Shown here one piece after another: positions 2,153-18,106 of a DNA stretch of 64,000 nt. Below the pieces are notes generated by a model. It saw only the letters and a list, made by a program, of their open reading frames with translations. It searched no databases and had not been told where the DNA came from. The position numbers were made by a program, and so were the translations under genes. Every line of letters begins with the position of its first letter. Positions within the stretch are counted from its first letter, which is position 1. Source of the stretch: Eutreptiella sp. 'Long Island Sound 2002' (taxonomy: Eukaryota; Protista; Euglenida); the NCBI GenBank assembly GCA_964036045.1, contig OZ038378.1, positions 163,308,001 to 163,372,000 of the forward strand, in the 5' to 3' direction.

Positions 2153-2805
2153 TCATTTGGACTTTGGCCCCGGGCATCCGTAGGCCGGGCCTTCCCAGAA
2201 CCAATGATGGGCCTTGCAAAACCGGCACTTTGTTTGGGGCGGACGGGAACAGTCTATCAGGTTGTTGCTCGTCTTTCCGCGGAAGTGCTCCTTACCGTCA
2301 ATGATGACCATTGTGGGCTTTGGTGGCGACCAGGAAGATGATGCGCTGGCGCTGCGCGACGTACCTTTGCGTGGAGTCTCCCCTGATGACGACGAGGATG
2401 ACGAGTCGCTGGAGCTGGTGCTTGACTCCTCTTCGGAACCAGACGAGTCGGACAGGCGCCGTCGGGACCCACGGCTCTTGCCTTTGCTTTTCTTGTGGTG
2501 CTCCCTTTTTGGTTTCTCCTTCTTCTTTTTGTGTTTGTCCGCTGACTTCAGTGCCTTTTTCCCCGGGTCATCACAGTCCACAATGATGGACCACACATCA
2601 GCCGCAAGCTCCTCACCAATTTGCACTTGCATTTCCAGCGCCGGTTGTCCTGGGGTGCTCCGGCAGTTCACGCTGTGCCTTCAGATAATGTTCCAGGGCC
2701 TTGGCGAGCTTCTGGGTCCATATGGTTGCCCCTGTGCACTTGCGAATGGTCTTAGCATTTTTTATAGTCAGGGCATCGTAACGCACCTTTTGCGATTTGT
2801 CAGGG
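2153..2805 (-). pseudogene. Gag-like ORF of element A, C-terminal half (Lys- and Ser-rich tract, terminal zinc knuckle)
   Basis: PDKSQKVRYDAL... then a frameshift near 2630-2670 into the tracked ORF, ending CSRPPQTKCRFCKAHHWFWEG (CX2CX3HX4C with the last Cys changed to Gly). Lies directly upstream of YR. Confidence 0.7.
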
Positions 2806-2858
2806 GTTTACCACAGGCAAGAAGCAAAAAGCAAATCTGGCAGACAGACATCTCGTGG
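2806..2858 (-). repeat. Split direct repeat B2 (3' terminus of element B)
   Basis: 51/53 identical to 3201-3253. Confidence 0.92.
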
Positions 2859-3131
2859 CAGTAACTCATGTGACATACAACGCTCGCCATGTCCGGAGCA
2901 CGACCCACCAAACCCGCGGTCAGGCTTGGACCTTTCCCTCCCGTCGATGCTGGACAAAGCCGCGTAGCGCACGGTCGCCGCCACGAGTAAGGCAGGCCAG
3001 CGGCTACCATAGTCACTCATAATCTCGGCACACGGCTGCCGGGCGACAACCCTCCAACACTGGCACAGGGGCACCACCTAGGTTGGGACACGACTGGCCC
3101 GCCCTCCACCGCAAGTGGGTGGGTGGGCGGG

Positions 3132-3204
3132 CAGAAAGTAAAAACACGTTGCCTGAGAGGGGAAGAGGGGGAGGTAAACCAACGGTGACAAGCACCGTGA
3201 GTTT
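3132..3204 (-). repeat. Split direct repeat A2
   Basis: 71/73 identical to 17526-17598; overlaps B1 by the 4-bp core. Confidence 0.92.
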
Positions 3205-3253
3205 ACCAAAGGCAAGAAGCAAAAAGCAAATCTGGAAGACAGACATCTCGTGG
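3201..3253 (-). repeat. Split direct repeat B1
   Basis: 51/53 identical to 2806-2858. Confidence 0.92.
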
Positions 3254-3598
3254 TTTATCTTTCTTCAGTAAAAGCGCCAGCACCACGCTGCCTCACGCCG
3301 AAATGCTCCCGGGGTGGGAGGGGTTGGGGTGGACAGGATCCGCGCGAGGGGATACACGTGAAAACACACCACTGTCAGGGTTCAGGCTGTCGTGGGGCGG
3401 GTGATACCCTGATCATCATAACAATACTGCACCCCCCGACAATCGCACAGGCCAAATCCGGCCCTCACCGAAGACCGGCGCAGGTACACCGCGCCGTACC
3501 CTCACCGGCGTACTGCACAGCCCCAGAGCGCACTCACGTGGCGCAAGGCGCTACGCAGCGGACAGCCACGGCACCCCAGCGCCACTGGTGGACCTCCC

Positions 3599-4090
3599 TC
3601 ATGCTAAGGCCGTAAACATATATGCCACCCGGCGCACCAAAAACAGGCCCCCTTGGATCCACAAATACGGGCGGTCACCGCCCACTTTTTTATGCGCAGA
3701 CAGGGACAGGGTCAGTTCGCGCACTCCCAGCCGCAACCGCCATCTGTGGCGGCACAAGTGTCGGCCCCTCTCGTGCTTGACATCGGGACTGCCCGCGGAG
3801 GTGAACATCTGGCGCGCAGTCCCACCAAGACGCGACGCTAAGTCCGTCACGGCGTCGCGCAGCAAGCCCGGCGCCTCCGCGGGTGCGCAAGGCCGGTCGA
3901 AGATGAGGCGTGCCTGGGTCCCCAGCCACACCCTGCGAACCGACCGACGCGCCACATGGCGGGCCAACACGTACTGCGCCTGCCGTTGTGCCCGCAGCCG
4001 CCGCCGCCCCCCCGCCTCAACTGAGCGGCGATGTCGCACGCCTCCCCGGTGCTGGCGCGGGCGCCGGTGGTGTCGGTTACGCCGAGGCAT
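3599..4090 (-). CDS. ORF4 of element B: Arg-rich basic protein of 163 aa, unknown function
   Basis: ATG at 4090 (MPRRNRHHRRPRQHRGG...) is preceded by TGTTTTTATACAAG|GT. The ORF lies between the RNase H end and repeat B1. Confidence 0.55.
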   Translation of the reverse strand: MPRRNRHHRRPRQHRGGVRHRRSVEAGGRRRLRAQRQAQYVLARHVARRSVRRVWLGTQARLIFDRPCAPAEAPGLLRDAVTDLASRLGGTARQMFTSAGSPDVKHERGRHLCRHRWRLRLGVRELTLSLSAHKKVGGDRPYLWIQGGLFLVRRVAYMFTALA

Positions 4091-4215
4091 ACCTTGTATA
4101 AAAACAGTGCAGTACATAGCACAGGAGCAAAGCTCACCCGCCGTAAACCACACTACAGCACCACGCCGCCCACAAACCGGCACTTGTGCAACGAACGCAG
4201 CAGCTCTCCCCACCG

Positions 4216-5913
4216 TCACTGGGGCGCTACCTCCGCCCGAGCAAGATGACCGTGGAAATTTGACTGCATCCTACTCAAAGGATCACCGGGTTGCAAATGG
4301 GATGGGCACCACACGACATAAACCTGCAGGCTGGAAACACATAACCGGCGCGACACCGAACGCAACATTGCATGCTGGATCTTTAACCACGTGGATGCCT
4401 TCAGCTGAACAAGCTGGGCAAACGCCACCTCACTGTCTGTCACTAACAGCAAACAATCCCACCGCAAACGTAAGGCGAGCCGCACCGCCCAGCATAACCC
4501 CGCCAACTCCGCCGTCTGTTGCGTATGACGCGCTACGGGCACCACCCAAGATCGGGCTCCCACCTGCGGCGAAAACCCCCCCACCCTGTACGAAAACAGG
4601 TCCCACGCCGCGTCCACGCACCAGCACCATGGCCTCAGGCGTTGAAAAAGCTCAGGTACAGGGGAGCGGGAAAGCGAAACAAACTGCCGCGCCCTCTCCC
4701 AAGGCAAAGCCCTATAAGGTTCAGCACACAAGCACAAAGTAGAGGCCAACGCATGCAGGATCTTTACAGGCACGTTCCTGTCATGGTCCCCCCACCGGAC
4801 CCAACAATACGCGCCCGCCAGCAAGGGCGCAGAGGTCAACCGCGGCCGGATGTGCCACTGGAGAGAGCCCAGCAATTTCTCCATCAGCTTGGGCCCTGGC
4901 ATGGGGGATACCGCCAACCTTAACCACGCAGCCAAAATCTGCAACCACGCGCGTCTGTGGCTATAAACCATACGGCGCCGTAAGTCCAAAAACTTTCCCA
5001 GCACAAACAGATGTTGCACCGGTTCCAAAGTGGACTTATCAGAGACGATAAACCTATTCTCAACCAGCAAACGTACACACTCCTTGGTGGTGCCGTGTAG
5101 CAGGGGACGATCGGCCGAAACTAGGACGAAGTCGTCCAAGTAATGCAGTAACTCCACACTCCGTGGGATGTGTAGTCGCAACAAGTCCCCCAGGATGCGC
5201 TGGCAGAGGTATGGCGAACACTTCCGGCCAAAAGGCAATCGCGTTGCCCCCACCACCGGTCCTCCCGGCCGTATCCTAGCCCGGAAAGCCGTGTCTACGC
5301 CCTCCGGCAGGACAAAACTCCAAAAGGCGTTGGTCAGGTCTATATGTGTGGCATATAGCCGCCGCCCGGGCGGTGTCTGGTTTAACAGTCGGCAAATACC
5401 CTCCTAGGAGGGTAAGGCAAAATGGGGGGGATCCGGGGACTCCTCATTTAATCCCACGCAAGACAGTATAAGGCTGACCTTGCGGGACGACTTAGGGATA
5501 ATGAAAGGAAAAACCGACGGTGTAGTACCCTCAGGGACCTCCCTGAAAATGCCCAAATGCTCAACAGCGGCAAAAAACTGACCGACCAACCCCGACACCT
5601 GACCCGCCCCGCCCGGCGGATCTCGCTCCACGTCGTAACCCGCCGCGGACTCCAAGAAGTCAGCCGGCACGACCTCCCTCCACAAACCATCCGGGATCCG
5701 GTACGACCCCACGGCCCCCAGCCCGCGCTGGACCACCTCCGGGACCACCGCCGCGAGCGACGGCTTGGGCGACGTATTCAAGTGAAGCAACGCCTCCCAT
5801 GCCGGTTCGGCAAACTCGCACAGTGCCAGACAAATCACATCCAGTGCAGAACCCAGGGCGAAGTCCTCAGCCACCCGGAAAACCCTATCCACAAACAACT
5901 CAATCCGCTGCAA
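4216..5913 (-). pseudogene. RT-RNase H of element B with one in-frame nonsense codon
   Basis: The tracked ORFs 5404-5913 and 4216-5256 are one frame joined through TAG at 5404-5406: ALPS*EG...THIDLTNAFWS...RLPFGRKCSP...HYLDDFVLV...GKFLD. RNase H motifs: CVDAAWD, QQTAEL, VTDSEV, PGDPLSR. The frame may extend upstream to 6561 through another stop. Confidence 0.93.
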
Positions 5914-6040
5914 AAGTAAAGGCCCTGGCGCTCACAACTTGCGCTGCAGCCAGCACGCTAACCCCGATAGGGCGAGCACCCGGGCATACAGGGGCAGTGC
6001 AATCAGGAACCGCGGGACAACCGGCGGATCGCCGCCGTCC

Positions 6041-6832
6041 CTAGGGAACTCCGGGCCCGGTAGGCTGGGGGGGGGAGCCGCCCACCAACCCCTCCCCGCC
6101 CCCCACACCCGCCCCCTCCACGGACCTCGCGGGTGGCACGGGCACATCATGAAGATCCGGCGCCAACGCCCCCCCCCCCCCCCCGCTCCCACCGGAGGTG
6201 GCGGAAATCCCACGACTGGGGGCAAGACCCTGACCAAACGCGGGCCGCTTACGGGGCGGACACTCCGTAACCTCGCGACCCCGCCTCCTGGGTACAAGGC
6301 GCTGCGGCCTAACGGTCGGGGTAACCGCATCGGAGCCACCCACCCGGGACGGGGAAGGCACACGGTACTGCCGGACAGGGGGAGGGGGGGGCGCGTACTG
6401 TTGTCGCCGTGATCCCGGATCCCGCGGTCGTTTGCGTGACCCCAACCCCCCAGCACCGGGCGCGCCAACCCTGAAGGCATCCGCCGGAGCAGCGACGCTC
6501 CCCATGTTCGGCACACACTCCTTAACTCTACGAACTCCCGATCCATCTCCAACATCCGCATCCGAGTCAGAGTCGGACAGGACGATAACTTCAGGGGGCA
6601 GTATAGGAGAAGCGGACTGGGCGCAAGCCGGGGAAGGGGAAGTTGGTCGTGGCTCCGATGGAGGTCCTGGGACAGCTAGGGATGAGCACGGCTGGGGGTC
6701 GTCGACGGTAGCGGCACCGACGCTATGCTCTTCCCGAATGTCCTCCACCAGAGTACTTCCAGTAGGCCCAAGAAGAGGCGGTCCATTGGAGGCTCCGCAA
6801 ACCGTGAGAGGTCGTACATAGCCATACCCCAC
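6041..6832 (-). CDS. Pro/Gly/Ser-rich linker ORF, probably the frameshifted C-terminal tail of the element B recombinase
   Basis: Overlaps the YR C-terminus in another frame and has low-complexity disordered composition; the assignment is inference. Confidence 0.4.
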   Translation of the reverse strand: MGYGYVRPLTVCGASNGPPLLGPTGSTLVEDIREEHSVGAATVDDPQPCSSLAVPGPPSEPRPTSPSPACAQSASPILPPEVIVLSDSDSDADVGDGSGVRRVKECVPNMGSVAAPADAFRVGAPGAGGLGSRKRPRDPGSRRQQYAPPPPPVRQYRVPSPSRVGGSDAVTPTVRPQRLVPRRRGREVTECPPRKRPAFGQGLAPSRGISATSGGSGGGGGALAPDLHDVPVPPARSVEGAGVGGGEGLVGGSPPQPTGPGVP

Positions 6833-7800
6833 AGAGCCGCAGGTAGCACCGTACCGCGTGGGCCCAGACCCACAGCCTCGTTAACATGCGGCAGCACCAG
6901 ATCGCCCACCACCTCCGGATCTCGAAACCCCAGGGCGTAACCCATGGCAGTACGCAAGCCAGCCCACCGCCCCAGGAAGGGAAAGTACTGGGCGGCGGGC
7001 TTGCGTACCCAGCATGCCGCGGAACCTCCCCTTCTGAGGGCATGCCAGCGAGCATCAGCCCACTTGGTGTCGCGGAGCAGGCGGCCGATGGTGTCCTCGA
7101 GGAAGGGGGCCCCTCCCTCGAAAACGGGCTCTTCAGGTTGCTTCCCCTTAGCTTGGCAGTAGACTCGGAGGAATTCCATCCAGGATCTTGCGTAAGCTGC
7201 GGCCGGTCGACAGACCCATCCGGGCTCTCCCACCTTGGTGCTGTAGAACCGGAGGCCCTCCTTGCGGTCAAGGTCACAGCACCGGATGGAGGCGGCCTCT
7301 CCAACCCGGAGCCACATCGTCCACGACAGGGCCGCCAGCGCCGCGACCGCCCGATCATCCGGCGCGGTGGCCGCATTCCAGATGTGCACAAGGGCTCGAG
7401 GCGACACGTACGCCTGCGGGCCGGGGCCTCTTCCCGACTTTGCAATGCGCCAGTGGAGGGCCGCCACAACCCGGGGGACCAATGCCAAATCCTCCGCCGC
7501 GCGGACGGCAGACGCCAGTCCGCGCAACCCGGATGCAGAGTGGCCATCGGCTGCACGCTCCGCCATGCAGAGGGAGAGGATTTCTGGCAGGGGCCTGGCC
7601 GGGATGCATGCTTCGGACTCCGCCAGCTGGTGTATAGCCGACCCATACCGCTGCCTCGTGCGCTGCTTCCAGGAATGCATGGCCGCCACTCTAGGGTAGG
7701 CCCGCTCGTCCGATTTCGCCAATCGCTCCCAGGCAGATGCCAAGCCTGCAAAGATGGCAACAAACCCGGACGCAACCTCCGAGGCAACCGCCGCGGGCAC
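6676..7800 (-). CDS. Tyrosine recombinase of element B
   Basis: All catalytic motifs are in one frame: WLRVGEA (R), STK (K), WHALRRGG (HxxR), GRW (W), AMGYA (Y). Confidence 0.93.
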   Translation of the reverse strand: MPAAVASEVASGFVAIFAGLASAWERLAKSDERAYPRVAAMHSWKQRTRQRYGSAIHQLAESEACIPARPLPEILSLCMAERAADGHSASGLRGLASAVRAAEDLALVPRVVAALHWRIAKSGRGPGPQAYVSPRALVHIWNAATAPDDRAVAALAALSWTMWLRVGEAASIRCCDLDRKEGLRFYSTKVGEPGWVCRPAAAYARSWMEFLRVYCQAKGKQPEEPVFEGGAPFLEDTIGRLLRDTKWADARWHALRRGGSAACWVRKPAAQYFPFLGRWAGLRTAMGYALGFRDPEVVGDLVLPHVNEAVGLGPRGTVLPAALWGMAMYDLSRFAEPPMDRLFLGLLEVLWWRTFGKSIASVPLPSTTPSRAHP

Positions 7801-7860
7801 TGCCCGTGAGCAGAAGGCCGCCCGCCGACCGCCCCACCCACCCCCAGCAGGGTCGTCCAG

Positions 7861-7915
7861 TCAGGCCCAGTGTGGGCACTGAAAGTGCCAGTGCTTGGGG
7901 GCAGTGGTCTTGGGG
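7861..7915 (-). CDS. C-terminal remnant of the element B gag (end of zinc knuckle)
   Basis: Reads PKTTAPKHWHFQCPHWA*, completing CRRCKAHSPET from 16883-16920. Confidence 0.8.
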
Positions 7916-8368
7916 GATCAATGGTCGGTTCCGATAGACTGAATGTCCCCGCCATAGACAATTCCAGCCATTAGTCCAGCAGTACTGTGTAGCTCAATCA
8001 ATGCACGTGTCCCCTTCTTGGTTGGGGTGCTCCACTATGTAAGGTACAGTGAGGCGTTTCTTGCGGTTGGCTCTGTGGGTCACGTGTGTGCTTGTCCTGT
8101 CTGCCGACTCTAGTGAACAACCAGGATCAATAAAAAAGCAGTCGTCCTTAAGGTGTGGAGTGCATTCACTTGTTTACGTGCGAACTGACTGGGCTGCAAA
8201 GCATGGCACTCACTCGGCCTTTCCCTGTCAGTTGCTGTTTAGTTTCAGGAAGTGCAGGGGGTAACATACAGATTCAGCAAGGGGGGGGGGTACATACAGA
8301 AGAAGAAGTATAAGAACAAATGTGAACTGTGGGCCGTGTGCAATCTGTACTGTAAGAAGGGTGTGGCG

Positions 8369-8845
8369 TCATGTGTTAAGGTCCTCGTCCACAAAGGCCT
8401 GCACCACATGCTGGTAAGCTAAGACCAGACGGGGCAGCCCCATGCACCACAGCCGCATTGTACCCTTGGGAACACCAGCAATGCGTTGTGTTGTGATGCC
8501 GGTTTTCAACAACCTATTGGTGTCCACGTCTGTGATGACAACCGTTCGTTCCATGGAGTGTACTCCGGCGTGTCTTTTCGACTCTGGCTGGCGACTCACA
8601 GGGTGCGGGACGTGCCGTTCGAGCCCCTGAGCCAATGCGGCAAGGAGACTGAATTGCTTTTGATCTGGTATAGATGGGACAAGCGTCCATGTTCGGTAAC
8701 TGCTGGATGCTGCTGCCAGATGCTCCGTGACGGTCACATCGTGGATCAGATTGTGGTCCTGCCTTCTCCGCTTTTGTTCTGTCCGTTCAGGATCAGACGA
8801 CCTGCGTCCCCGCTTCCTCTTGCGGGAGGAATCGCCAGGTTCCAT
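8369..8845 (-). CDS. ORF3 of the LINE, 158 aa, basic NLS-like N-terminus, unknown function
   Basis: ATG-to-stop ORF inside the TSD-bounded insert (RKRKRGRR, KRRR). Preceded by a long pyrimidine tract and AG at 8872-8873, 26 nt upstream of the ATG. Confidence 0.6.
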   Translation of the reverse strand: MEPGDSSRKRKRGRRSSDPERTEQKRRRQDHNLIHDVTVTEHLAAASSSYRTWTLVPSIPDQKQFSLLAALAQGLERHVPHPVSRQPESKRHAGVHSMERTVVITDVDTNRLLKTGITTQRIAGVPKGTMRLWCMGLPRLVLAYQHVVQAFVDEDLNT

Positions 8846-8947
8846 TGTGGCCGCAGCAATGCAGAGGTAGGCTAATCAGAAAAAAGGGGGAGGGTTCGGG
8901 GGGGTAGGGCGGGGGAACGCTTGTCTACCTCGAGGGCTTGGTGACGT

Positions 8948-8989
8948 CCACGCGTTGCCCTTGCGGCCGCTGTGGGGGTCTCCCGGCGC
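8948..8989 (-). promoter_or_regulatory. 42-nt stem-loop motif, copy upstream of LINE ORF3
   Basis: 38/42 identical to 16544-16585. Confidence 0.6.
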
Positions 8990-9231
8990 TTTGGAGGGGG
9001 GGCACCCGGTGGATCCAACCGGGCTTAGCGGCTAGCCTCCGTGGAGCACGACCGCACGCTTGGCTGGCTGGACGCTTCCACGGAGGTGTTCCATGTGCCC
9101 GTATCACTATCACTGTTGGAAGGGGTGCTCACACCCCCGTCAGAGAGAAGTGTGAGGTTAAGAGCTGTGAGTAGGTGATGCCCTTCCGCAGAGGTTGCCC
9201 GAAGAGGTGACTCGTGCAGGGGAAAATCCAG

Positions 9232-10176
9232 TCATTTAACAACAGGCGAAGTTGCTTCCAGTGAGAAGAGTTTGACTCTTTTGGGCGCCGCCGGGGTGCC
9301 CGTGTGGCAGAGTTGTAGCTGTGGCGTGCGGGGGTGTGGGTAGCGGGGATGGAGCTGCCTGCCTTGATCGGCCAGGCGGTGTGCCTCATTGTTGCCCTCG
9401 ATGGTCACATGCGAGGGGACCTTGATCCAGTGTACGGTGCGTGAATTGTTGTCAAGTTCCATTAGCAGTTGTTCCCACAAGGGGACATTGGAAACTGGTC
9501 CCGACGAGCCGACCCACCCCCGCAGTCGCCAGCGGCGGGCGGCCCCGGATGCTCCCAAAATGACGTATTGTGAATCCGTGCATAGTGCAATGTCACCTGT
9601 GTGAAAGATTTTAAGTGCTCTAATGACCGCCAGGAGCTCGGCGGAATTGTTGGTTTGCCGGTACTCATCCGGGACATATGCAGCGATGCTGGTGTGATGC
9701 TCACAGAAAATGCCATACCCTGCTAGCCTGCCTGCCGGCCCCTCAACAGCGGAGGAACCGTCGGTATAGACTTGCGGGATGCCTTGGTCCTGTAGGTCCT
9801 GCAGGACTTCCTGCAGCTCCTCTGCTTTTTCAAGTTTGCGCATTTGTCGTGCTGTGGCGCGCGCCTTTGCTCTGGCGGGTGGGGGGGTTGGGGGGTTATT
9901 GGGGAATGAGGGGACCGGGTCCGGTTGCTCTGCCATGGGCTGTGCGGTGGTGCACGAGCGGGACGATCGTCGCAGCTTGGTGAGGAACCAGGTGTGGATC
10001 GTATCCGGGATGGGTAGGTAGCGTGGGCACGAGGACCAGAGGTTTAGGACGTGATACCAGTGGTCACAGAATTTGTCCCACGTGACCCTGAAAAATGGCT
10101 GGTGTTTTTTGGTGCATCGTAGCGACCAGTTGGTGATAACGGCGGACCGGCCCACAAGGCCTGCTGGGGTGCTCAA
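9232..10176 (-). CDS. C-terminal part of LINE ORF2 with an RNase HI domain
   Basis: VYTDGS, QTNNSAELLAV, CTDSQYV, WRLRGWVGSSGPVSNVPLW, WIKVPSH, GNNEAHRLA (last catalytic Asp appears as His). Joins the RT ORF by a frameshift in the A6/T6 runs near 10261-10273. Confidence 0.9.
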   Translation of the reverse strand: MSTPAGLVGRSAVITNWSLRCTKKHQPFFRVTWDKFCDHWYHVLNLWSSCPRYLPIPDTIHTWFLTKLRRSSRSCTTAQPMAEQPDPVPSFPNNPPTPPPARAKARATARQMRKLEKAEELQEVLQDLQDQGIPQVYTDGSSAVEGPAGRLAGYGIFCEHHTSIAAYVPDEYRQTNNSAELLAVIRALKIFHTGDIALCTDSQYVILGASGAARRWRLRGWVGSSGPVSNVPLWEQLLMELDNNSRTVHWIKVPSHVTIEGNNEAHRLADQGRQLHPRYPHPRTPQLQLCHTGTPAAPKRVKLFSLEATSPVVK

Positions 10177-13100
10177 GGAGGCCGCAGGGTCCTCTTGCAG
10201 AAGTTGGGAAACGTTAAAAGGTTGGAAGCCCTCTGGCCTGAAGACCTGATTAATGAATGCAAAAAAGTTTTTTGAACAAATTGGCAGTGATACAGTGTAT
10301 GTGCGACGGTTTCTAGTTCCTGATCAACAGGGCACCACACCTCTAGCGGTTTCCATCTCTGCTGTCGTTGGCCTACAGGGAGCCTGGACCATAATGCCTT
10401 ATGAATAAAATCCTTGTGCCGCGGTGGAAGGTTGCAGCGGTGGAAGGCTTCCCAGACCGAGTCTGGCTGGCGTGGTTTCGGGGAGTATGGTTGTGAAAGA
10501 AGCTCTGCCACTGGTGCTCGTGTCCATGCATACCAAAAGGTAAGGTCCGGAGGGGGTTGGGGGGGCAGTGCAAAAGTGGGCAGGAGAGAGGCGGGGAGCA
10601 GTGGTTGATCCACCTGGAGGCGGTGCCGATAGACGGGTTCCCAGGTGGGAGCAAGCATGGAAAAATAAGTAGGTTGTTCAAGCAATTGTCCAATTGTTAA
10701 AACTCCTTGGCGGATGAGGCGGGGCGCGAAGTAGGTGTGGCAGTGTTCATTCAAGAAAAAGGTCGAGTGCCACGCTGGGGCATCACCGGGTAGCTGGGCG
10801 GGGTGTTCAAAGTGCACATCTTTTTTAACCAGTGAGAAAGCGCGTGCACACCACCCCAGGAAAGGCATAGTCTGTTTAACAACATTTGGTCCTAGCTGAA
10901 AGAAAGGCAGTGATGTCGGGCTTAGGATAATACCCAGGTCGGCAGCAAATGGCTGGAATGATGTGTGTAAAATACTGGGAACGCTCAGTGGGTCTTTAAC
11001 GTAAGCCACAAGTGCTGACGCATGCTGCCAATACAGGAAGGTTTCCGGTGCGGCCAGATTGTATCCTCCCTTGTGCAGAGGGTGGGAGAGAATGTCCAGC
11101 GTGATGGACCAGGAGTTGAGCTTTAATGCAACCTGGTAGACCGTGCGCAGTGCGCTCACCACAGGGTCCGAGGGGAAAACCACTCTCGCTGGATAAATCA
11201 GGAGAGGGAGAATCCAGAGTTTCAGCAGGAGGACCCTTTCAGCTAGCGACAGATCCCATGACTGCATTGCAAAGGCCCGACCAATGGCCTTTTGCAGTGC
11301 ATGGGAGTATGCCACTTCTGGCGTGACATGGCCAAACTCAATCCCCAGGTATTTGTAGCTGTCTTGGAACTGCAGACCGGTCGAGAGTAGCTGGACTTTC
11401 AAACTCTCTGTCCAGTGTCCCTTCAGGAGGATGGCTGACTTTTTGTGGTTAACCATCACTCCTGAGTATTTAGAAAAGGCTTTGAGTGAGCCCCAGACTA
11501 TTAGGAAAACAAAGACAGCTTGCGCTGGTTCCCCGGTCACGATGATGAGCAGATCATCCGCATAGAGCAGAATTTGTACCGTGTCAGAGACACAGGTCAG
11601 CTTCTGAGCCAGTGGTGAAATCAGCATAGCGAATATAGAAGGAGAAAGGGGGCAGCCCTGCCGCACACCCGAGGCAGGGGAGAATCTGTGCTGGGGCATT
11701 ACTCCTCCTCTTACCAGTAAACAAATTGGAGCAGCAAAGATATTCATGAGCAGATTAACTATCGGTAGCGGAATACACATGTCGACGAAAAAGGTCTTGG
11801 CAAAAACGTGAGAAACCGAGTCAAAGGCTTTGCTGAAATCCACTGGGCAGAAAATACCTTGCGGCGTTTCCGCAAACGTACCAAAGGCCTGCCAGAGATT
11901 ATCGAAGATATAGCGGCCTTTAATGAAACCTTTTTGTTGAATCGGGGTGATGGCTGCAATGAAGTCCTGCAGCTGCAGCGCCACAATGTTCGCTACCCAT
12001 TTGTTGCAAATGTTTTGGAGCACCAGGGGTCTGAGGTCCTGCACAGCGGGCAGACCTGCCGTTTTTGGAATAGGATTCAGCATGGCCATGGACCAGGTTT
12101 CAGGCAGGGTAGGATTATCCAACAGTGATTGATAAATTTGGTGCATCAAAGGAACAAAGTGTCCCGAGAAACACTTATAAATAGCTCCTGTAAAACCGTC
12201 AATGCCCGGAGAGGAGGTCGCACTTAGGGCGTCAAGCGCCGCGTGCACCAGGTCAGCTGATGCTGGGCGAATGAGTAACTTGGCCATGTCAGCCAGAGGT
12301 TTACCCTTAAAGAAAGAGCGTAAGTACTCCGTGACCTGAGGGGAGGAGAGCCCTGAGACGGACATTTTGTCAGACCAGAAACCCAGCAGCTCTTGTGCTA
12401 TCGACTCGGGGTCGGGGAGAACCTGGCCTGTTTTGCTGCGGAGCGTGTGCAGTTGCCGTTTCACCTGTAGCTGGCGGGTGAGGCGCCAGATTTCTTGCTT
12501 CCGCCGCCAGGGTTGTGAGGCCCATGGGTCGGATATCGTGGTCTTCAACTTGTCTAGCACCAACTGGCCTGTCTGGTCCTCGTCAGCCTTTTCAGCCAGG
12601 GCGGCAAGGACGCGATAAGCCACATGAGGGTCGGGAATATCATATCCTTTAGCCAAAAGAAAATCGTGGCCTCCGGGGGCTAGCTTATGTGATGTGGATT
12701 CCCTCAATAGAATTTGTACTTCGGTATAGCCCGTGCAGCAATGAGTCCTCTCATATGCGAGGGCTTGTCGGCGGATCAGATCCTGGGAGTCCGCCCATTG
12801 GGCGAGACCTGTAGTTTGCAAACTGGAGAGTTGTGCCTGTATGTCGTCTACAGTCTCTTGGGACTGCAGAAAGGAGACAGGACATCTTTTGCGACGCTGC
12901 TGGTCGCAGGAGGCAGATAAGAGCGAAAAAACTACAGCCTTGTGGTCAGAGGAAGCCAAAAAACATGGATAGCATTCACGTAAAACAGAGACAAAGTTGT
13001 GCGGTACCAGGACGCGGTCAATCCGGCGTCTTCTGTCTGTGCTGATGTCCGTCATGTCCGCTTCGTGCTGACTGACGTCCGGTGGAGGGGCGTCCTTGGG

Positions 13101-13839
13101 GCATAAAGATGGGAAACCCCATGTCCACCCTTCCAGGGGGAAATCTTCAGTGCGGCAGGAGTGTAGCGTAGCAAAGGCGTCCACTAAATCGTGCTGGGCA
13201 ATGAATGATATCTCGCACTCTCTCGCCTCGAGGACATCCTTCTGTTCAGGGGAGGTTCTCAAGGAGGAGACATCTCGGGAGGGCAGGATAACAGAATTGT
13301 GGTCAGACAGAAAAATGGTATCAGAAGGAATGAGATGACGGAGCGATGCTAACTTTTTCCACTGGTGAGTTCTGATGGTGGCATCATGATGGAAATGGCA
13401 GACAGCGAAGGAAAGTTCGATGCCGTCTGGGTCCTGAAGCCTGACGAATAGGAAGCGGCTGGTCCAGGTCCAGCTGTGGACGTGCGTCCATGTGGTGGGG
13501 TATAGGATCGCTACCCCCCCCCCGTCCTTTCGGGGACAGGTTGGTGAGTAACTTGATGTCCCGTTTGGAAAATTGTTCATGCAAGTTGAGCAGGGTTTAC
13601 TCATCCGGAATGTGAGGCTCCTGGAGCCCCATGACATGGAGTTTTGAGCGATGGAAAAATTTCATAATTTGTGTGTACCTGTGCTCGTGGCCTGTGCCGT
13701 TCGGGACCAGGGTGGACAAGCCGTTGGCGTTGAAGGTGCACGCCTTGAGGGAGGCTGCCACAAAATTGGGGGGGGACAGACGTGGATTCTGGTGACCCCC
13801 ATGGGTGGGTAGTATCTTGGTAGCGCAAGTCTTACTCAT
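10173..13839 (-). pseudogene. LINE ORF2: AP endonuclease, reverse transcriptase and CCHC zinc finger
   Basis: APE: TFNANGL, MGLQEPH, GGVAIL, SDHNSV, RIDRVL, SDHKAV. RT: SPGIDG, LRPLVL, QKGFIKGR, VDFSKAFDSV, GVRQGCPLSP, LYADDLL, YKYLG. Zinc finger: CPVDQELETVAHTLYHC. There is a TAA at 13597-13599 and a frameshift in the G run near 13515-13524. Confidence 0.95.
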
Positions 13840-15017
13840 TTGTCATTGCGGGTTGCTCTGGCATACGTGGTTTTGCCAGCTGGTTGCTGGCGTTTCCGAG
13901 CCTCCATAGAGTCTCTCTTTAGGACGTTAAATTCGTTCAGCGGTATGATGGGGATTGATGTATTTTTCTGAGCATCATGCAGGATGACACTGGTCTGGGG
14001 CAGGTGCGGCCCTTGCAGCTTCCATGCCGCGGTGCTCATGCGCCCTGGGTTCCAAGTGGATCTGGTTAATGTGTCAACAACAAAGCCATTCGAAGACAGG
14101 AAATCGCGCACTGCGGTGTCGCGTAGCGAGATAGGTACATTATACGCTACTAGGGCCTGGGGGGGGCTGGTGCCTTCTCCTTGTCCTGACGCGGACGACC
14201 TGGTCGAGCAGACGGAGCTGGCGTCAGACTGGGGGTCAGGATTGAACCAGTCTCGTTGTTTCTCGTCTTTAAAAAGGAGCCCGTTGGCTTGGAGTTGGAC
14301 GTACGGTCCTTGTACAAAAGAGTAGAGATCCTCTGGAGCCTTGAGCCCCAGGCGAACTTTATTGGGTCCTGCGATTTGCAAGGACCACGAGGCCGGATCA
14401 AGCAGTGAGTCTGTCAGAATGGCGTGCAGGGTGAGCCATAGGTTCTTACTATACTGCTCTTTGTGGGGTTTTTTGTAGAAAACCTCCAGTACGGCCTCTT
14501 GATCATGGAAAGCGGAGCCATCGAACTCTCCCAGTGACATAGCTGAAAAGTGATCCTTCTTTTTGTGTGCGTCAATAAACTTGGACCTCTCCTGAGCGTT
14601 GAGGTCGAGCAAGAATATCTTAGTGTGTAATGGTTTGTTGGGAGGGCGGAGATTCATGGGTCCGGCCACATTAAAACACTGGGCTCCAGATAGGCCCATG
14701 TGTAGCATGGTCTGGGACATGTCGTTCTCGGTCATGTGAATCGCAAAAGTTGAAGTGGGGGGAGGTGGTAAGGTGGCATCCTTACTCTCTAGGGTCGAGC
14801 CCTGCGAGAGAAGCCTCACCGTGTTGTAGACCGGTTTGAGTCTCTGCGAGACGGACTGCGGGGTAAAACTGATTACCCAGAAATCCATTGTGCCTCCCGT
14901 CGCCAGGTGGACACGGCGTGTCAATCTGGAGAAAGACTCTGGCGTGGCGGACATCTTCTGTAGTGTCTGATCGCACCACTGGCTGAAAGGAACCTGTGTG
15001 GTGACAGCAATCAACAT
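13836..15017 (-). CDS. LINE ORF1, distal part (ORF1b)
   Basis: 393-codon ORF whose TGA overlaps the ORF2 ATG (ATGA, 13836-13839); the frame stays open upstream to about 15085. Confidence 0.7.
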   Translation of the reverse strand: MLIAVTTQVPFSQWCDQTLQKMSATPESFSRLTRRVHLATGGTMDFWVISFTPQSVSQRLKPVYNTVRLLSQGSTLESKDATLPPPPTSTFAIHMTENDMSQTMLHMGLSGAQCFNVAGPMNLRPPNKPLHTKIFLLDLNAQERSKFIDAHKKKDHFSAMSLGEFDGSAFHDQEAVLEVFYKKPHKEQYSKNLWLTLHAILTDSLLDPASWSLQIAGPNKVRLGLKAPEDLYSFVQGPYVQLQANGLLFKDEKQRDWFNPDPQSDASSVCSTRSSASGQGEGTSPPQALVAYNVPISLRDTAVRDFLSSNGFVVDTLTRSTWNPGRMSTAAWKLQGPHLPQTSVILHDAQKNTSIPIIPLNEFNVLKRDSMEARKRQQPAGKTTYARATRNDK

Positions 15018-15075
15018 ATCGAGACGATTAGGGGGCCATGAGGCAACGGAAACTGGGCTCGCATACGCCCCCGTG

Positions 15076-16458
15076 TCACAGGCGCATGGTCATAACCACA
15101 TTGTTCAGACGATTAGGGGGCAGGTCTCTGTTGAGCCGGTGTTGCAATTCAATACATTGCGAAATTTCAGTGTCCTGGAGCACAAGGACCACGTTTGAGG
15201 ACTCTTTTGGAAAGACGGTTGACAGCTCATCAGTACCTGGTTTGTCCAGGCCTTGCCAGTTTCGGGCCTCGCCGTCCGTGTCGAAGAACTGACAGGACTG
15301 GAGACAAGTGAAATCCTTGTCCCAACGAAGCTGTAACATCAGTTGTTGCTGCTCCGCGGTGTGTAGGGGGGTAGATGCTTTCGGAGTGGGTAGTTTCGCC
15401 ATGCGCTCACGCATGGCGGTGACAGCAGCGACATTGTCCTGGGAGAACCCACAGCGAACAGTGCCCATTGCGGGGGGTGCGGTGCTTGGAGGGGGGGGTA
15501 TTATGTTGGGGGGTGTATCGGGGACTCTGTTTGGGTAGAACCCTTTATCCTTCTTTTTGGCGGGCGAGACCCCTATGGCCACGGCCAGGCGCCGATCCAT
15601 AGATGCTCGTTGGTCGACCAGCACTTGCTGTTGTCGGAGAACCTCTTCTTGCTGTGCTTTGATGGTGATGTCAAGATTGCTGTCTGGGCTCTGTAGCAAG
15701 TTGTAGATGTTCGTCTCCGTTTGCGCCATTTGCTGGTTAACGTGCGTCCATTGGTCGTGTAACTTCTTGCGGGCGGGCTCATCGTTGCCTTCGATCATTT
15801 GGAGCTGCTCCTCACATTCTTTGCTTTGTGCAATTAGGAGGAAAAACGTTTTCCTCGCCTCATACAGTGGTGAGCCGTCCTCGAGCTTGTACTGCTGTAA
15901 CGAGAGCCTGATCGCGGCGGCCAGGTCCTCCAACGCGGCTGTGAGCATCGCTCTGTGTTTGATTGGTTGTTGATCCTGTGGTGGGCCAGCCGCCGTTAGG
16001 ATGTCCAGATGCGCACTGATGGCGGATCGTTTGTGCGTAAGATCGATGATATTTTGCGCTGCCGAGAGGGTCAGGGCCCTCATTATTTGGTCTGGTCCAT
16101 TGGAGTGCTGGGCCACTTCTTCCATCACAGTGTCTGTGTTGGCTTCGGAGGCTCGTTCCATGACCTTTGTGAAGTAGGCTTGTAGGGTCTGTTGACTCTG
16201 TTGCGATAGTATTTCTTTGAAGTGCTGCTTGTCTGGATCCCATTGATGCGGACCCAGAGCCGGGTTTAGGAGGGTTCCCAGAACCACATTGGCTTGGAGT
16301 TGTTTTTGGAGGAGGATGGTCATATCTTCCAGATCTTCCTTCCTGGAGATGTCAAGCAATTGCTGTGCGACCGGCAGGTCCACGAGCGGGATAGGGATCA
16401 TGTTCAAGTCACCCGAGAGGATGGTGTTCGTAGATGTTGCTCCACTGGAACTCGCCAT
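15076..16458 (-). CDS. LINE ORF1, proximal part (ORF1a), coiled-coil rich
   Basis: 460-aa ORF from ATG at 16458, Gln/Leu heptad-like helices, located between the 5' UTR and ORF1b. Confidence 0.8.
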   Translation of the reverse strand: MASSSGATSTNTILSGDLNMIPIPLVDLPVAQQLLDISRKEDLEDMTILLQKQLQANVVLGTLLNPALGPHQWDPDKQHFKEILSQQSQQTLQAYFTKVMERASEANTDTVMEEVAQHSNGPDQIMRALTLSAAQNIIDLTHKRSAISAHLDILTAAGPPQDQQPIKHRAMLTAALEDLAAAIRLSLQQYKLEDGSPLYEARKTFFLLIAQSKECEEQLQMIEGNDEPARKKLHDQWTHVNQQMAQTETNIYNLLQSPDSNLDITIKAQQEEVLRQQQVLVDQRASMDRRLAVAIGVSPAKKKDKGFYPNRVPDTPPNIIPPPPSTAPPAMGTVRCGFSQDNVAAVTAMRERMAKLPTPKASTPLHTAEQQQLMLQLRWDKDFTCLQSCQFFDTDGEARNWQGLDKPGTDELSTVFPKESSNVVLVLQDTEISQCIELQHRLNRDLPPNRLNNVVMTMRL

Positions 16459-16543
16459 ACTCAGGAAGGGGTGTCCGCCCTTTCACCGGTAAGCGGTTGC
16501 GACTGGGGGGGAGCTCAGTCACACCACCAGGACCGGGAGATGA

Positions 16544-16585
16544 CCACGCGTTGCCCTTGCGGCCGCGGTGGAGGTCTCTAGGCGC
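16544..16585 (-). promoter_or_regulatory. 42-nt stem-loop motif, copy in the LINE 5' UTR
   Basis: 38/42 identical to 8948-8989; CCACnGCG pairs with CGCGTGG around a GCAA tetraloop hairpin. Confidence 0.6.
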
Positions 16586-16843
16586 CTGGGGGTGCAGGAG
16601 AGGACCCGGGCCCAGAGGCTCAGTGTGCAAAGAGGCGACCGGTGTTCGGCAGACCTTCAAAAGCGCTGAGTACAGCAGGTCGTTCGTCCACTGTTGCGTA
16701 CTTGTGGAGCAGTGGTGCTTCTGTTGCGGCTGGGAGGCGCTTGGGACGGCTGAGACTTCGTCTCCGTGGTACTCCTCGTAGTAGCAGATGCTTTAGTTGT
16801 GCCTAGGGGCATGATCCCCGGTAGGCAGTCCATGAAAAGACAT

Positions 16844-16859
16844 CGAAAAAAAATAGACA
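16844..16859 (-). other. Relict SL (nt 11-26, TGTCTATTTTTTTTCG) immediately downstream of the full SL
   Basis: Begins exactly after the internal AG of the SL (ACTTTCTGAG|TGTCT). Confidence 0.93.
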
Positions 16860-16885
16860 CGAAAAAAAATAGACACTCAGAAAGT
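16860..16885 (-). other. Complete euglenid spliced-leader exon copied into DNA: ACTTTCTGAGTGTCTATTTTTTTTCG
   Basis: Exact match to the 26-nt Euglena SL as I recall it. It is not followed by a GT intron and sits at the LINE 5' junction. Confidence 0.93.
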
Positions 16886-17514
16886 GGTCTCGGGGCTGTG
16901 GGCCTTGCAGCGGCGGCATTCCCCCGGCGCAGGGGCGGACACAGGGACTTTCCGTCCCGAGGCATTAACCCGTTTGAGGACGCCTCCCTCACGCACGAAC
17001 CAAACCCCTCGCCACCGAAACGAATCCGTCGGGTGGGCGGAGGCCTGAGACCACTGGAGGGCATCCAGCTGCTTGCCCTCGGCTGATTCGGCATCTTCGC
17101 GGGCTCGTTGTCGTCCTTCGTACGCCTTGTGGCTGTCCCATAGGGTGTCCCAGACACGGTTCGCCAGAACCTCCCCGGGAGTCAGGTCCTCGGTGCCCTC
17201 CATGTCCGCTCTAGGCACCTGCTGCACGTACTGCTCCAGGGACTCCGCGGTTTGCTTCATCCACCCGGCCAGGCGCTCACGGCCACGGAACTCCGCCAAG
17301 GCCTCCGTCGTAAGCCGTGGCGTCTTGGGTGAGGCCAGCTCCGCCTTCTCGAGCCTCCTGCGAAGGCCCTCCAATTCTGCTGCCTGTTGCCGGACCAAGG
17401 CCTCCAGTCGGGATTCGTGTGCGAAGAAGGGGATGGTCCAACCGACGGCTCCACGCCGCGATTGTCCGAATCCTTCGGGGGGCTGGCCGACTTGTTGGGG
17501 GTGAAAAGGTTCAT
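16883..17514 (-). pseudogene. Gag-like ORF of element B, split by the LINE insertion
   Basis: ATG at 17514 (MNLFTPNK...), an apparent frameshift into the tracked frame, coiled-coil-like RLEALVRQQAAELEGLRRRLEK, then VSAPAPGECRRCKAH, which resembles the C-terminus of the element A gag. Confidence 0.75.
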
Positions 17515-17525
17515 GGTACAAAAAA

Positions 17526-17598
17526 CAGAAAGTAAAAACACAGTGCCTGAGAGGGGAAGAGGGGGAGGTAAACCAACGGTGACAAGCACCGTGAGTTT
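17526..17598 (-). repeat. Split direct repeat A1 (5' terminus of element B), containing a polypyrimidine tract and AG
   Basis: 71/73 identical to 3132-3204. Minus strand reads TTTACCTCCCCCTCTTCCCCTCTCAG (AG at 17547-17548), 32 nt before the gag ATG at 17514. Confidence 0.9.
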
Positions 17599-18106
17599 GC
17601 TCCCCGGCCTCTGTGAACTCTTGTCCCCCGTCTGTCGCCATGGGCGTCTGGGTTGCTGACGGCGGAGGCCTCACAGCCAGCCGTTGAGCCAAAGCAAAAG
17701 CAGCAGCCGACTATTCGGTGGTGAGGTCGAAGGATTGAACTTCCAGTCTCCAGTTTAGCATCATACCAAACAGCAGCGCGTCTCGGTAGTAGGAGAAGGA
17801 GGTGTTCACCATTGTGACTCCAAGCTGGTCAAAAAAGATGCGGGCAATAGAGGTCCTGTTTACCCTGTTGGAGGAGGCCCACGTGGCTCAGCTGGCCAGT
17901 AAGACTATCGCCCGATGTTCAGCTGGAATCTTCATCGCCAATTTGGGCTGGGCCACGAGTGCCGACCAGGCTGCGTCCAGAATGTCGTGTTGCTCTGAGA
18001 TCAACCGCTCCCAAGACCAGTCTACATCCGTCGACGCTGCCGTCGCATGCTTGAACCGACTAATGGCACCAAAGACAGAAGGCAACTTAAATAGCCTATA
18101 ATACAC
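17599..18106 (-). pseudogene. Gag-like ORF of element A, N-terminal half
   Basis: One reading frame MYYRLFKLP...EAGEQ with two in-frame stops (17888-17890, 17711-17713). It continues in frame into 2805 (EQ-T-PDKSQK) after excising element B. Confidence 0.65.

Follow-up and report, generated by a model that had tools for sequence, protein, structure and literature searches.

The window analysed here comprises 64,000 nucleotides (nt) of the genome of the euglenid Eutreptiella sp. 'Long Island Sound 2002' (assembly GCA_964036045.1, contig OZ038378.1, positions 163,308,001 to 163,372,000 of the forward strand) and carries on its minus strand a full-length L1-like long interspersed nuclear element (LINE) of approximately 8.97 kb, the 5' end of which is formed by a complete spliced-leader (SL) exon and, directly behind it, a truncated second copy of the same leader (the relic). 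On the minus strand the window sequence reads ...CACAG CCCCGAGACC ACTTTCTGAG TGTCTATTTTTTTTCG TGTCTATTTTTTTTCG ATGTCTTTTC, where ATGTCTTTTC opens with ATG (Table 1). The relic corresponds to SL nt 11-26, i.e. to the part of the leader right after its only AG (16877-16876 in the full copy), and follows without gap on the precise 3' end of the full SL exon, in agreement with a first-pass annotation, made from the sequence alone, which had placed the second unit directly after the SL-internal AG. That annotation had assigned the structure to 16841-16895; the structure itself stands, while the SL starts at 16885 or 16886 rather than at 16895, the interval 16895-16886 being flanking sequence. The window holds a single, perfect relic, and the 16-mer TGTCTATTTTTTTTCG was encountered at two places only within the 64 kb, with none of 100 shuffles producing any match.

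The leader represents the organism's own SL exon, as had been proposed, since SL RNA genes with the same exon are present both in the genome and in euglenid contigs from the environment. In genuine SL RNA genes of this genome the sequence runs on as CG|GTATATACTCGCTCC, i.e. with a GTATA intron after the same exon, which is not the case in the window, the SL intron GTATATAC being absent behind the tandem in the window. Approximately 1000 genomic sites display the same SL exon followed by G, among them SL RNA genes, with several intron variants, and seven environmental euglenid contigs combine the same SL exon with a GTATA intron and an Sm-like site, AATTTTTGG. With respect to the 5' boundary of the leader, a C precedes ACTTTCTGAG in 23 of 25 distinct retro-copied SLs (L001-L093), with position -2 being variable; the environmental SL RNA genes read ..TA CACTTTCTGAG. 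From these sequences, the SL as reverse-transcribed seems to be 27 nt long with C as its first base, i.e. 1 nt longer than the 26-nt form quoted earlier.

The element was confirmed to be a LINE by the presence of RVT_1 and zf-RVT domains in its second major open reading frame (ORF2), by human LINE-1 ORF2p as the best solved relative of that product (E 5e-30), by a target-site duplication (TSD) and by the existence of 5'-truncated copies. The match of ORF2 to Exo_endo_phos is weak, being confined to the last motif (amino acids 198-232, E 0.006, 16.7 bits) and below the cut-off, while the 393-amino acid ORF is distantly similar (23% identity) to the post-SL ORF of another SL-headed family. As had been claimed, the element starts directly at its TSD: CCCCGAGACCACT and CCCCAAGACCACT flank the whole element, and contigs of four public runs (from three studies) join the 3' flank to position 16883 onward with the LINE absent, thus representing an empty site, either allelic or located in a paralogous copy of the host repeat. 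These contigs also show (C)ACT to be shared by target and SL, so that microhomology was used at the 5' join. TSDs of 11-14 nt also pair in three other copies (L033/L068, L034/L078 and L041/L084).

Table 1. Features of the SL-headed LINE and its insertion site (window positions; TSD, target-site duplication; UTR, untranslated region; uORF, upstream ORF; aa, amino acids)
Feature	Position	Strand	Remarks
5' TSD copy, CCCCGAGACCACT	16883..16895	-	last 3-4 nt, (C)ACT, common with first SL nt
Flank, part of TSD	16895-16886	-	
Complete SL exon in DNA	16860..16886	-	26 nt from 16885 (A); 27 nt if C at 16886 is counted
SL-internal AG, sole AG of SL	16877-16876	-	
Unit 1, SL nt 11-26	16875-16860	-	
16-nt SL relic, SL nt 11-26	16844..16859	-	exact; abuts full-SL 3' end and LINE body
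ATG at LINE body start	16843-16841	-	
LINE 5' UTR	16459..16843	-	begins ATGTCTTTTC; 16-codon uORF
ORF1, 460 aa	15076..16458	-	no Pfam family
Second ORF, 393 aa	13836..15017	-	no Pfam family
ORF2, 1154 aa	10173..13637	-	RVT_1 (E 6e-23) and zf-RVT; weak APE-type endonuclease motif
RNase H ORF	9232..10176	-	RNase_H (E 4e-25); 4-nt overlap with ORF2 end, other frame
Extra ORF, 158 aa, 3' part of element	8369..8845	-	conserved as DNA among other copies
LINE 3' end and oligo-C tail	7912..7920	-	...TGAT ends at 7917; five C at 7916-7912
3' TSD copy, CCCCAAGACCACT	7903..7915	-	one mismatch to 5' copy

To place this structure in a wider context, the 2.28-Gb genome was searched for tandems of two 16-nt units with at most one mismatch. 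This yielded 80 matches at approximately 75 loci, as opposed to none with a reversed-pattern control, so that the SL-plus-relic structure at the 5' end of the LINE, together with the window sequence and the shuffling result, can be regarded as real and as recurring elsewhere in the genome in many families. Three units (i.e. two relics) were found at five loci and four units at none. The SL followed by a base other than G was detected at 761 sites in the half of the pattern space that was searched, which extrapolates to approximately 1400-1500 sites, distributed over many repeated families. Loci with zero, one, two and three relics therefore form a series of approximately 1400-1500 : 70 : 5 : 0, a 15- to 20-fold fall for each extra relic. 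The 27 tandem loci that were inspected represent at least 14 sequence clusters, and each of these loci has an ORF soon after the leader. In one other family the relics are layered, L005 possessing one relic and L014 two, while L012 and L016 carry a perfect relic over a shared decayed one; L024 (see below) belongs to the same layered series. Near-full inner SLs are present at L030, L055 and L056. Among tandems with one mismatch, inner units were mutated hardly more often than outer ones (10 versus 9), a difference that is uninformative. L020 and L030 have an odd 5' part of the outer SL in common. At L008, an ORF with a 2OG-Fe(II) oxygenase domain follows right after SL and relic; this ORF is probably LINE-encoded and does not mark a host retrogene.

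The position at which the second unit begins was found to be restricted to two registers. Among the matches listed (100 rows), 27 junctions lie right after the AG, eight lie two nt earlier and none lies elsewhere. The latter register, about a quarter of the sampled tandem junctions (8/35), retains the AG (CG|AGTGTC), the full SL being followed by AGTGTCTATTTTTTTTCG, 18 nt in length. Examples are C5:38783248, C15:15074422, C21:31606904 and L024, the last of which displays a 16-nt relic outside an 18-nt relic. An SL variant with GAGAG was considered as the source of the 18-nt register and rejected, as none of approximately 55 inspected DNA-encoded SLs contains GAGAG. Approximately 40% of the rows of the register census belong to a high-copy sequence, TTTTTTTTCG TTG(T/C)CAC TTTTTTT CG (e.g. 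C3:829744 and C4:37321183), which has the appearance of a degraded tandem of 3' SL segments that became fixed in a repeat family, and which is absent from all inspected loci. Additionally, contigs of public runs X2 and X4 contain a full SL, a 17-nt spacer containing TTTCTGAG and a further full SL with leading C.

Within the family of the window LINE, SL was located directly before ATGTCTTTTCATGRAC in all of the 30 best full-length 5' ends, with upstream flanks that are mutually unrelated. A census by exact pattern retrieved 28 full-length 5' ends, all of them with the SL at the same body position and with different flanks. The 16-nt relic is present in four of these (the window copy, C8:52023600, C10:67177475 and C21:12790535) and an 18-nt relic that keeps the AG (CG|AGTGTC...) in three; seven ends sit inside a larger repeated unit and the remaining ends are without relic. 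When tabulated, the full-length 5' ends of the family are consequently all SL-headed and fall into relic-less, 16-nt and 18-nt classes. SL-less sister copies of full length, which would speak for a conventional 5' UTR, were not found among the inspected and exact-pattern ends, the two cases with bases other than CG before the ATG being mutated SLs. Judged by shared substitutions over 1.8 kb, the window copy (L031) groups with the relic-less L040 and L041, the relic-bearing L034 groups with the relic-less L035-L038, and the relic-bearing L048 is far more divergent. The 16-nt relic is thus scattered over different subgroups, indicating at least three independent origins within the family. L039 and L042 are sister copies with different flanks and the same 18-nt-relic 5' end, and their sequences indicate that one source gave this end twice.

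Some further copies depart from the common pattern. In L052 (C2:8945432-8945457) a mutation has turned the final CG of the DNA-encoded SL into AG (..CCTTTTTAG|ATGTC), and the resulting pyrimidine tract with AG, exactly at the body start, would be a type of site from which relic-less SL progeny could arise. A mutated SL (TGTCTATCCTTTTTCG) is present in eight copies (L049, L051-L054 and L058-L060, on C25, C2, C1 and C14), upstream of which near-identical sequence stops at different points, namely at -85 in L054, at -826 in L049 (following an A15 run) and, in the remaining copies, beyond -1500; they would represent retro-copies of a read-through transcript with variable 5' truncation, or else a LINE carried in a larger repeat. 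L044, in which two SLs are separated by 30 nt, was considered as a 5' transduction of flanking DNA; its spacer resembles the start (GTGTCTTTTTGTCCAT) of another abundant SL-headed family, and a nested insertion appears as likely as a transduction. The first letters of the LINE body in the window (16834-16843, A-TGTCT-TTTC) themselves resemble a worn SL relic (TGTCTATTTTTTTTCG), and several other SL-headed families open with ATGYYTTT.., GTGTCTTTTTGTCC.. or GTGCTATTTCTTCG..; the 5' UTRs may conceal rounds that are older still.

Repeated trans-splicing and retrotransposition, as suggested in the first-pass annotation, represent the best explanation for the SL-plus-relic structure and are regarded as quite probable. 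The parent of the window copy would have been a genomic copy with the SL already written in its DNA, transcribed from somewhere upstream as part of a read-through precursor. The acceptor chosen by the spliceosome for trans-splicing would then have been the sole AG of the SL written in the DNA (CUUUCUGAG|U); the flank and the first 10 SL nt would thereby have been dropped and a fresh SL added, after which the product RNA would have been retrotransposed by target-primed reverse transcription into another retroelement. Both the read-through precursor and the splicing event itself are deduced from the junctions: the old unit is cut right after the sole AG, which is preceded by CUUUCU, and the new unit always supplies the exact 3' end of a complete exon, whatever body follows. 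These junctions, at exon end and AG, bear out the claim that the retrotransposed LINE RNA bore an SL together with a relic truncated at the AG within the SL. In a mature mRNA this AG is preceded by no more than 8-9 nt, which is too short for a branch point, an argument from established spliceosome biology that has also been applied to dinoflagellates. Transcription of the precursor must therefore have begun upstream of the SL in the genome, implying passage through DNA between the addition of the two leaders. Since the relic itself lacks an AG, each further round adds exactly one unit, as is seen at the three-unit loci, and the claim of repeated rounds is sustained by the two-relic loci and by the decayed inner relics.

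A number of observations weigh against this explanation. Approximately 13 independent full-length copies of the family are without relic, compared to the four with 16 nt and three with 18 nt, and these numbers, like the genome-wide series, do not support as a general rule the earlier proposal that the element gains 16 nt per generation; as the relic-less state cannot arise from an SL-bearing copy via the internal AG, another route dominates. Additionally, an SL-less master with AG|ATG was not found by exact-pattern search of the assembly, although at a family divergence of 3.7-5% a decayed master could escape such a search. The 18-nt register would, from its sequence, need a UG acceptor. Inspection covered 30 of the 80 tandem matches (the 27 distinct loci referred to above) and three of the five three-unit loci, and Logan contigs of public runs (library type unspecified) break at the tandem repeat. 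Finally, the evidence for re-splicing here comes from comparative genomics; a search for ORF1 homologues returned three genomic proteins and no transcripts. Relic-less copies could be produced from a master with a real acceptor at AG|ATG, or by precise initiation at the DNA-encoded SL. One candidate for an SL-less master, C8:67645002 (AG|ATGTCTTTTCATGAAC), proved to be a chance match, the body of which does not continue as the LINE.

The predominance of relic-less copies and the lack of a master with a true acceptor speak for the proposal that the family consists mainly of ordinary LINEs, in which the SL is inherited, an internal promoter initiates precisely at the SL and trans-splicing to the internal AG occurs occasionally on read-through transcripts. 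This possibility deserves serious consideration, even if we are inclined to doubt it. A promoter role of the retroposed SL is also debated for dinoflagellates (PMC6050394). The common 5' end of sister copies apart, it may be noted that the nematode SL is an intragenic promoter element. The common 5' end of the sisters L039 and L042 and the odd outer SL shared by L020 and L030 would fit inheritance as well; identical 5' ends of sisters can, however, also stem from a single master. Furthermore, the approximately 1400-1500 SLs are letter-perfect over the 19 nt tested, which comes free if the leader is renewed and requires strong selection if it is inherited. The perfection of these SLs across diverged families thus favours renewal from SL RNA, while the absent master favours inheritance.

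The remaining alternatives to repeated trans-splicing dispense with the second round altogether. A minor SL RNA isoform, with a 42-nt exon containing an internal 16-nt duplication, could add SL and relic in a single trans-splicing event, and the approximately 1000 SL-plus-G sites with their several intron variants do indicate that SL RNA genes are heterogeneous. We nevertheless regard such an isoform as very unlikely, given that no SL intron follows any of the 27 tandem loci inspected, that the tandem loci lie dispersed in the genome as single copies instead of forming arrays, that the seven environmental SL RNA genes possess the normal exon, and that the shared decayed inner relics, the near-full inner SLs and the 18-nt register would be left unexplained. 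Even less credence is given to an origin of the second unit without splicing, be it by slippage of the reverse transcriptase (RT), by a template jump between SL-bearing RNAs or to a free SL exon, or by replication slippage. LINE RTs do jump between templates, as in U6/L1 chimeras (10.1101/2025.02.02.635956), and the T8 run of the leader is slippery, with T7 and T9 variants occurring; yet the duplication always ends at the exact SL 3' end and is confined to two registers, where slippage would scatter, and a jump onto an mRNA would bring body sequence and one onto SL RNA would bring intron, neither of which is seen at the inspected loci. An assembly chimera or cDNA contamination is of negligible probability: contigs do break at the repeat, leaving the tandem not visible in them, but the TSD and the empty-site contigs in four runs from three studies, the approximately 75 loci with different flanks and the completeness of the 8.97-kb element, the flanks of which are continuous in the host retroelement, all speak against it.

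The 3' end and the surroundings of the LINE were also compared between copies. Thirty other copies end with ...GGAACCGACCATTGAT, followed by a run of C1-C9 and then by unique flank, and the tail is accordingly neither poly(A) nor A-rich. Non-A tails occur in other LINE clades, and membership of the LINEs is not excluded by an oligo-C tail. A first look returned 669 candidates for the 3' end and 150 for the 5' end, with only approximately 40 real full-length 5' ends, which is the usual 5' truncation of LINEs. A 68-nt direct repeat (79% identity) is located upstream of ORF1 (16523-16590) and upstream of the 158-amino acid ORF (8927-8994). An internal SL was absent from all 30 copies of the 3' part, so that trans-splicing within the element is not indicated at this place. 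Many SL-headed insertions of other families show, immediately ahead of the SL, a run of 10-14 C; together with the oligo-C tail, these runs suggest priming on G-runs and C-run target sites. The host of the insertion is another retroelement on the same strand, with an RT at 4216-5256; it was noted in the regions 2800-7900 and 16896-17700 (minus strand) and is repeated in the genome, as judged from depth and from the empty-site contigs.

Several known systems share individual features with this LINE. The RT alignment, the zinc-finger tail, TSDs of approximately 8-14 bp, microhomology at the 5' junction and massive 5' truncation are held in common with L1-clade LINEs (human LINE-1 ORF2p, PDB 8uw3/8sxt/8c8j), in contrast to which the present element has a host SL as its 5' end instead of an element-encoded promoter, a short oligo-C tail, and an RNase H as well as two further ORFs. 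A likeness may also be seen to elements of the R2/L1Tc type, in that a precise 5' end would be obtained from a longer transcript without a promoter at the insertion site. R2 and L1Tc carry HDV-like 5' ribozymes. The promoter independence of the LINE and the analogy to these ribozymes, both put forward in the first-pass annotation, remain proposals. From such elements the window LINE differs in that no ribozyme family is matched and the proposed agent is the host spliceosome. An Rfam scan of 7800-17300 at E<=1 returned a chance match to a CRISPR repeat only, although a novel ribozyme could escape such a scan. In the Euglenozoa, L1Tc/ingi elements possess the Pr77 promoter and are reported to yield unspliced transcripts (PMC1874656, PMC8190864), which is the opposite solution to that of this LINE.

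A physical tie between LINEs and SL sequence in an organism with SL trans-splicing is likewise known. CZAR, CRE and NeSL-1 are SL-gene-specific LINEs with fixed-site insertion in SL RNA genes. The same specificity applies to SLACS (PMC10161547). Unlike SLACS, CZAR and NeSL-1, the SL of the present LINE is without intron and its TSD derives from a non-SL target; among 30 copies, the flanks resemble neither one another nor SL genes, which speaks against fixed-site insertion in SL RNA genes. For Schistosoma mansoni it has been reported that retrotransposons might bear an SL, which was read as trans-spliced and retro-transcribed elements; this concerns six cases, which according to the authors may be chimeras, without TSDs, relics or a family-wide pattern (PMC5832876).

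The closest parallel is offered by the mRNA recycling of dinoflagellates with its relict DinoSL sequences (Slamovits & Keeling 2008, via PMC6050394, PMC5585692 and PMC3942190), which had been invoked in the first-pass annotation and is indeed described in these sources. There, genomic retro-copies carry the SL exon at their 5' end, truncated relics stand right behind the full SL, the number of SLs reflects rounds of retroposition, and an upstream promoter with re-splicing is debated against the SL as promoter, all as in the present case; the 'counter' idea has also already been applied to dinoflagellate retrogenes (PMC6050394). The present case differs in lineage (euglenid) and in the SL involved, in the genomic evidence provided by TSDs and an empty site, in the second, non-AG register, and in that the recycled RNA is an autonomous LINE, a likely source of RT, in many families. 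A literature search retrieved nothing on euglenid SL-headed LINEs or SL relics, nor on relict SLs on LINEs. Recycling with relict SLs thus appears to have been reported so far for dinoflagellate genes only, and the present analysis adds the tandem relic on a LINE, its genome-wide and in-family recurrence, the register census and the geometric series of relic numbers. With regard to other species, a metagenome scan for the tandem gave no matches. One metagenome contig from a different, AT-rich euglenid (L096; JACCDR010719729.1, 810-830, minus strand) carries the SL, behind which ATCAAGC...ATG and an open reading frame stand in place of the intron; approximately 420 nt of unrelated DNA lie upstream of the SL, and SL-headed retro-copies may extend beyond this species.

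A broader proposal is that euglenid LINEs are promoterless and live off SL trans-splicing, the retro-copied SL serving as a portable 3' splice site composed of a pyrimidine stretch and an AG. We consider this unlikely in such a general form. If it were true, a copy lying in transcribed DNA would be cut out of a host transcript, re-leadered and re-capped, and would be able to jump again, while the number of 16-nt stumps would record the rounds passed by its lineage. Trans-splicing would then constitute a central control point of genome expansion in this 2.3-Gb genome, because LINEs are the likely source of RT for SL-tagged retrogenes.

The SL at the 5' ends of retro-copies additionally provides practical tools, namely a sequence tag by which all full-length retro-copies can be located in the 2.3-Gb genome, a minimum estimate of the rounds passed through DNA, and a means of mapping the true SL 5' end, for which the retro-copies indicate 27 nt with C first. 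LINEs must recreate their exact 5' end in each generation, and the known solutions are internal promoters and 5' ribozymes. The structure described here would constitute genomic evidence for a third route to a LINE 5' end, in which SL trans-splicing by the host leaves a countable scar, and it would extend relict-SL 'mRNA recycling' to a second, unrelated trans-splicing lineage and to autonomous retrotransposons.

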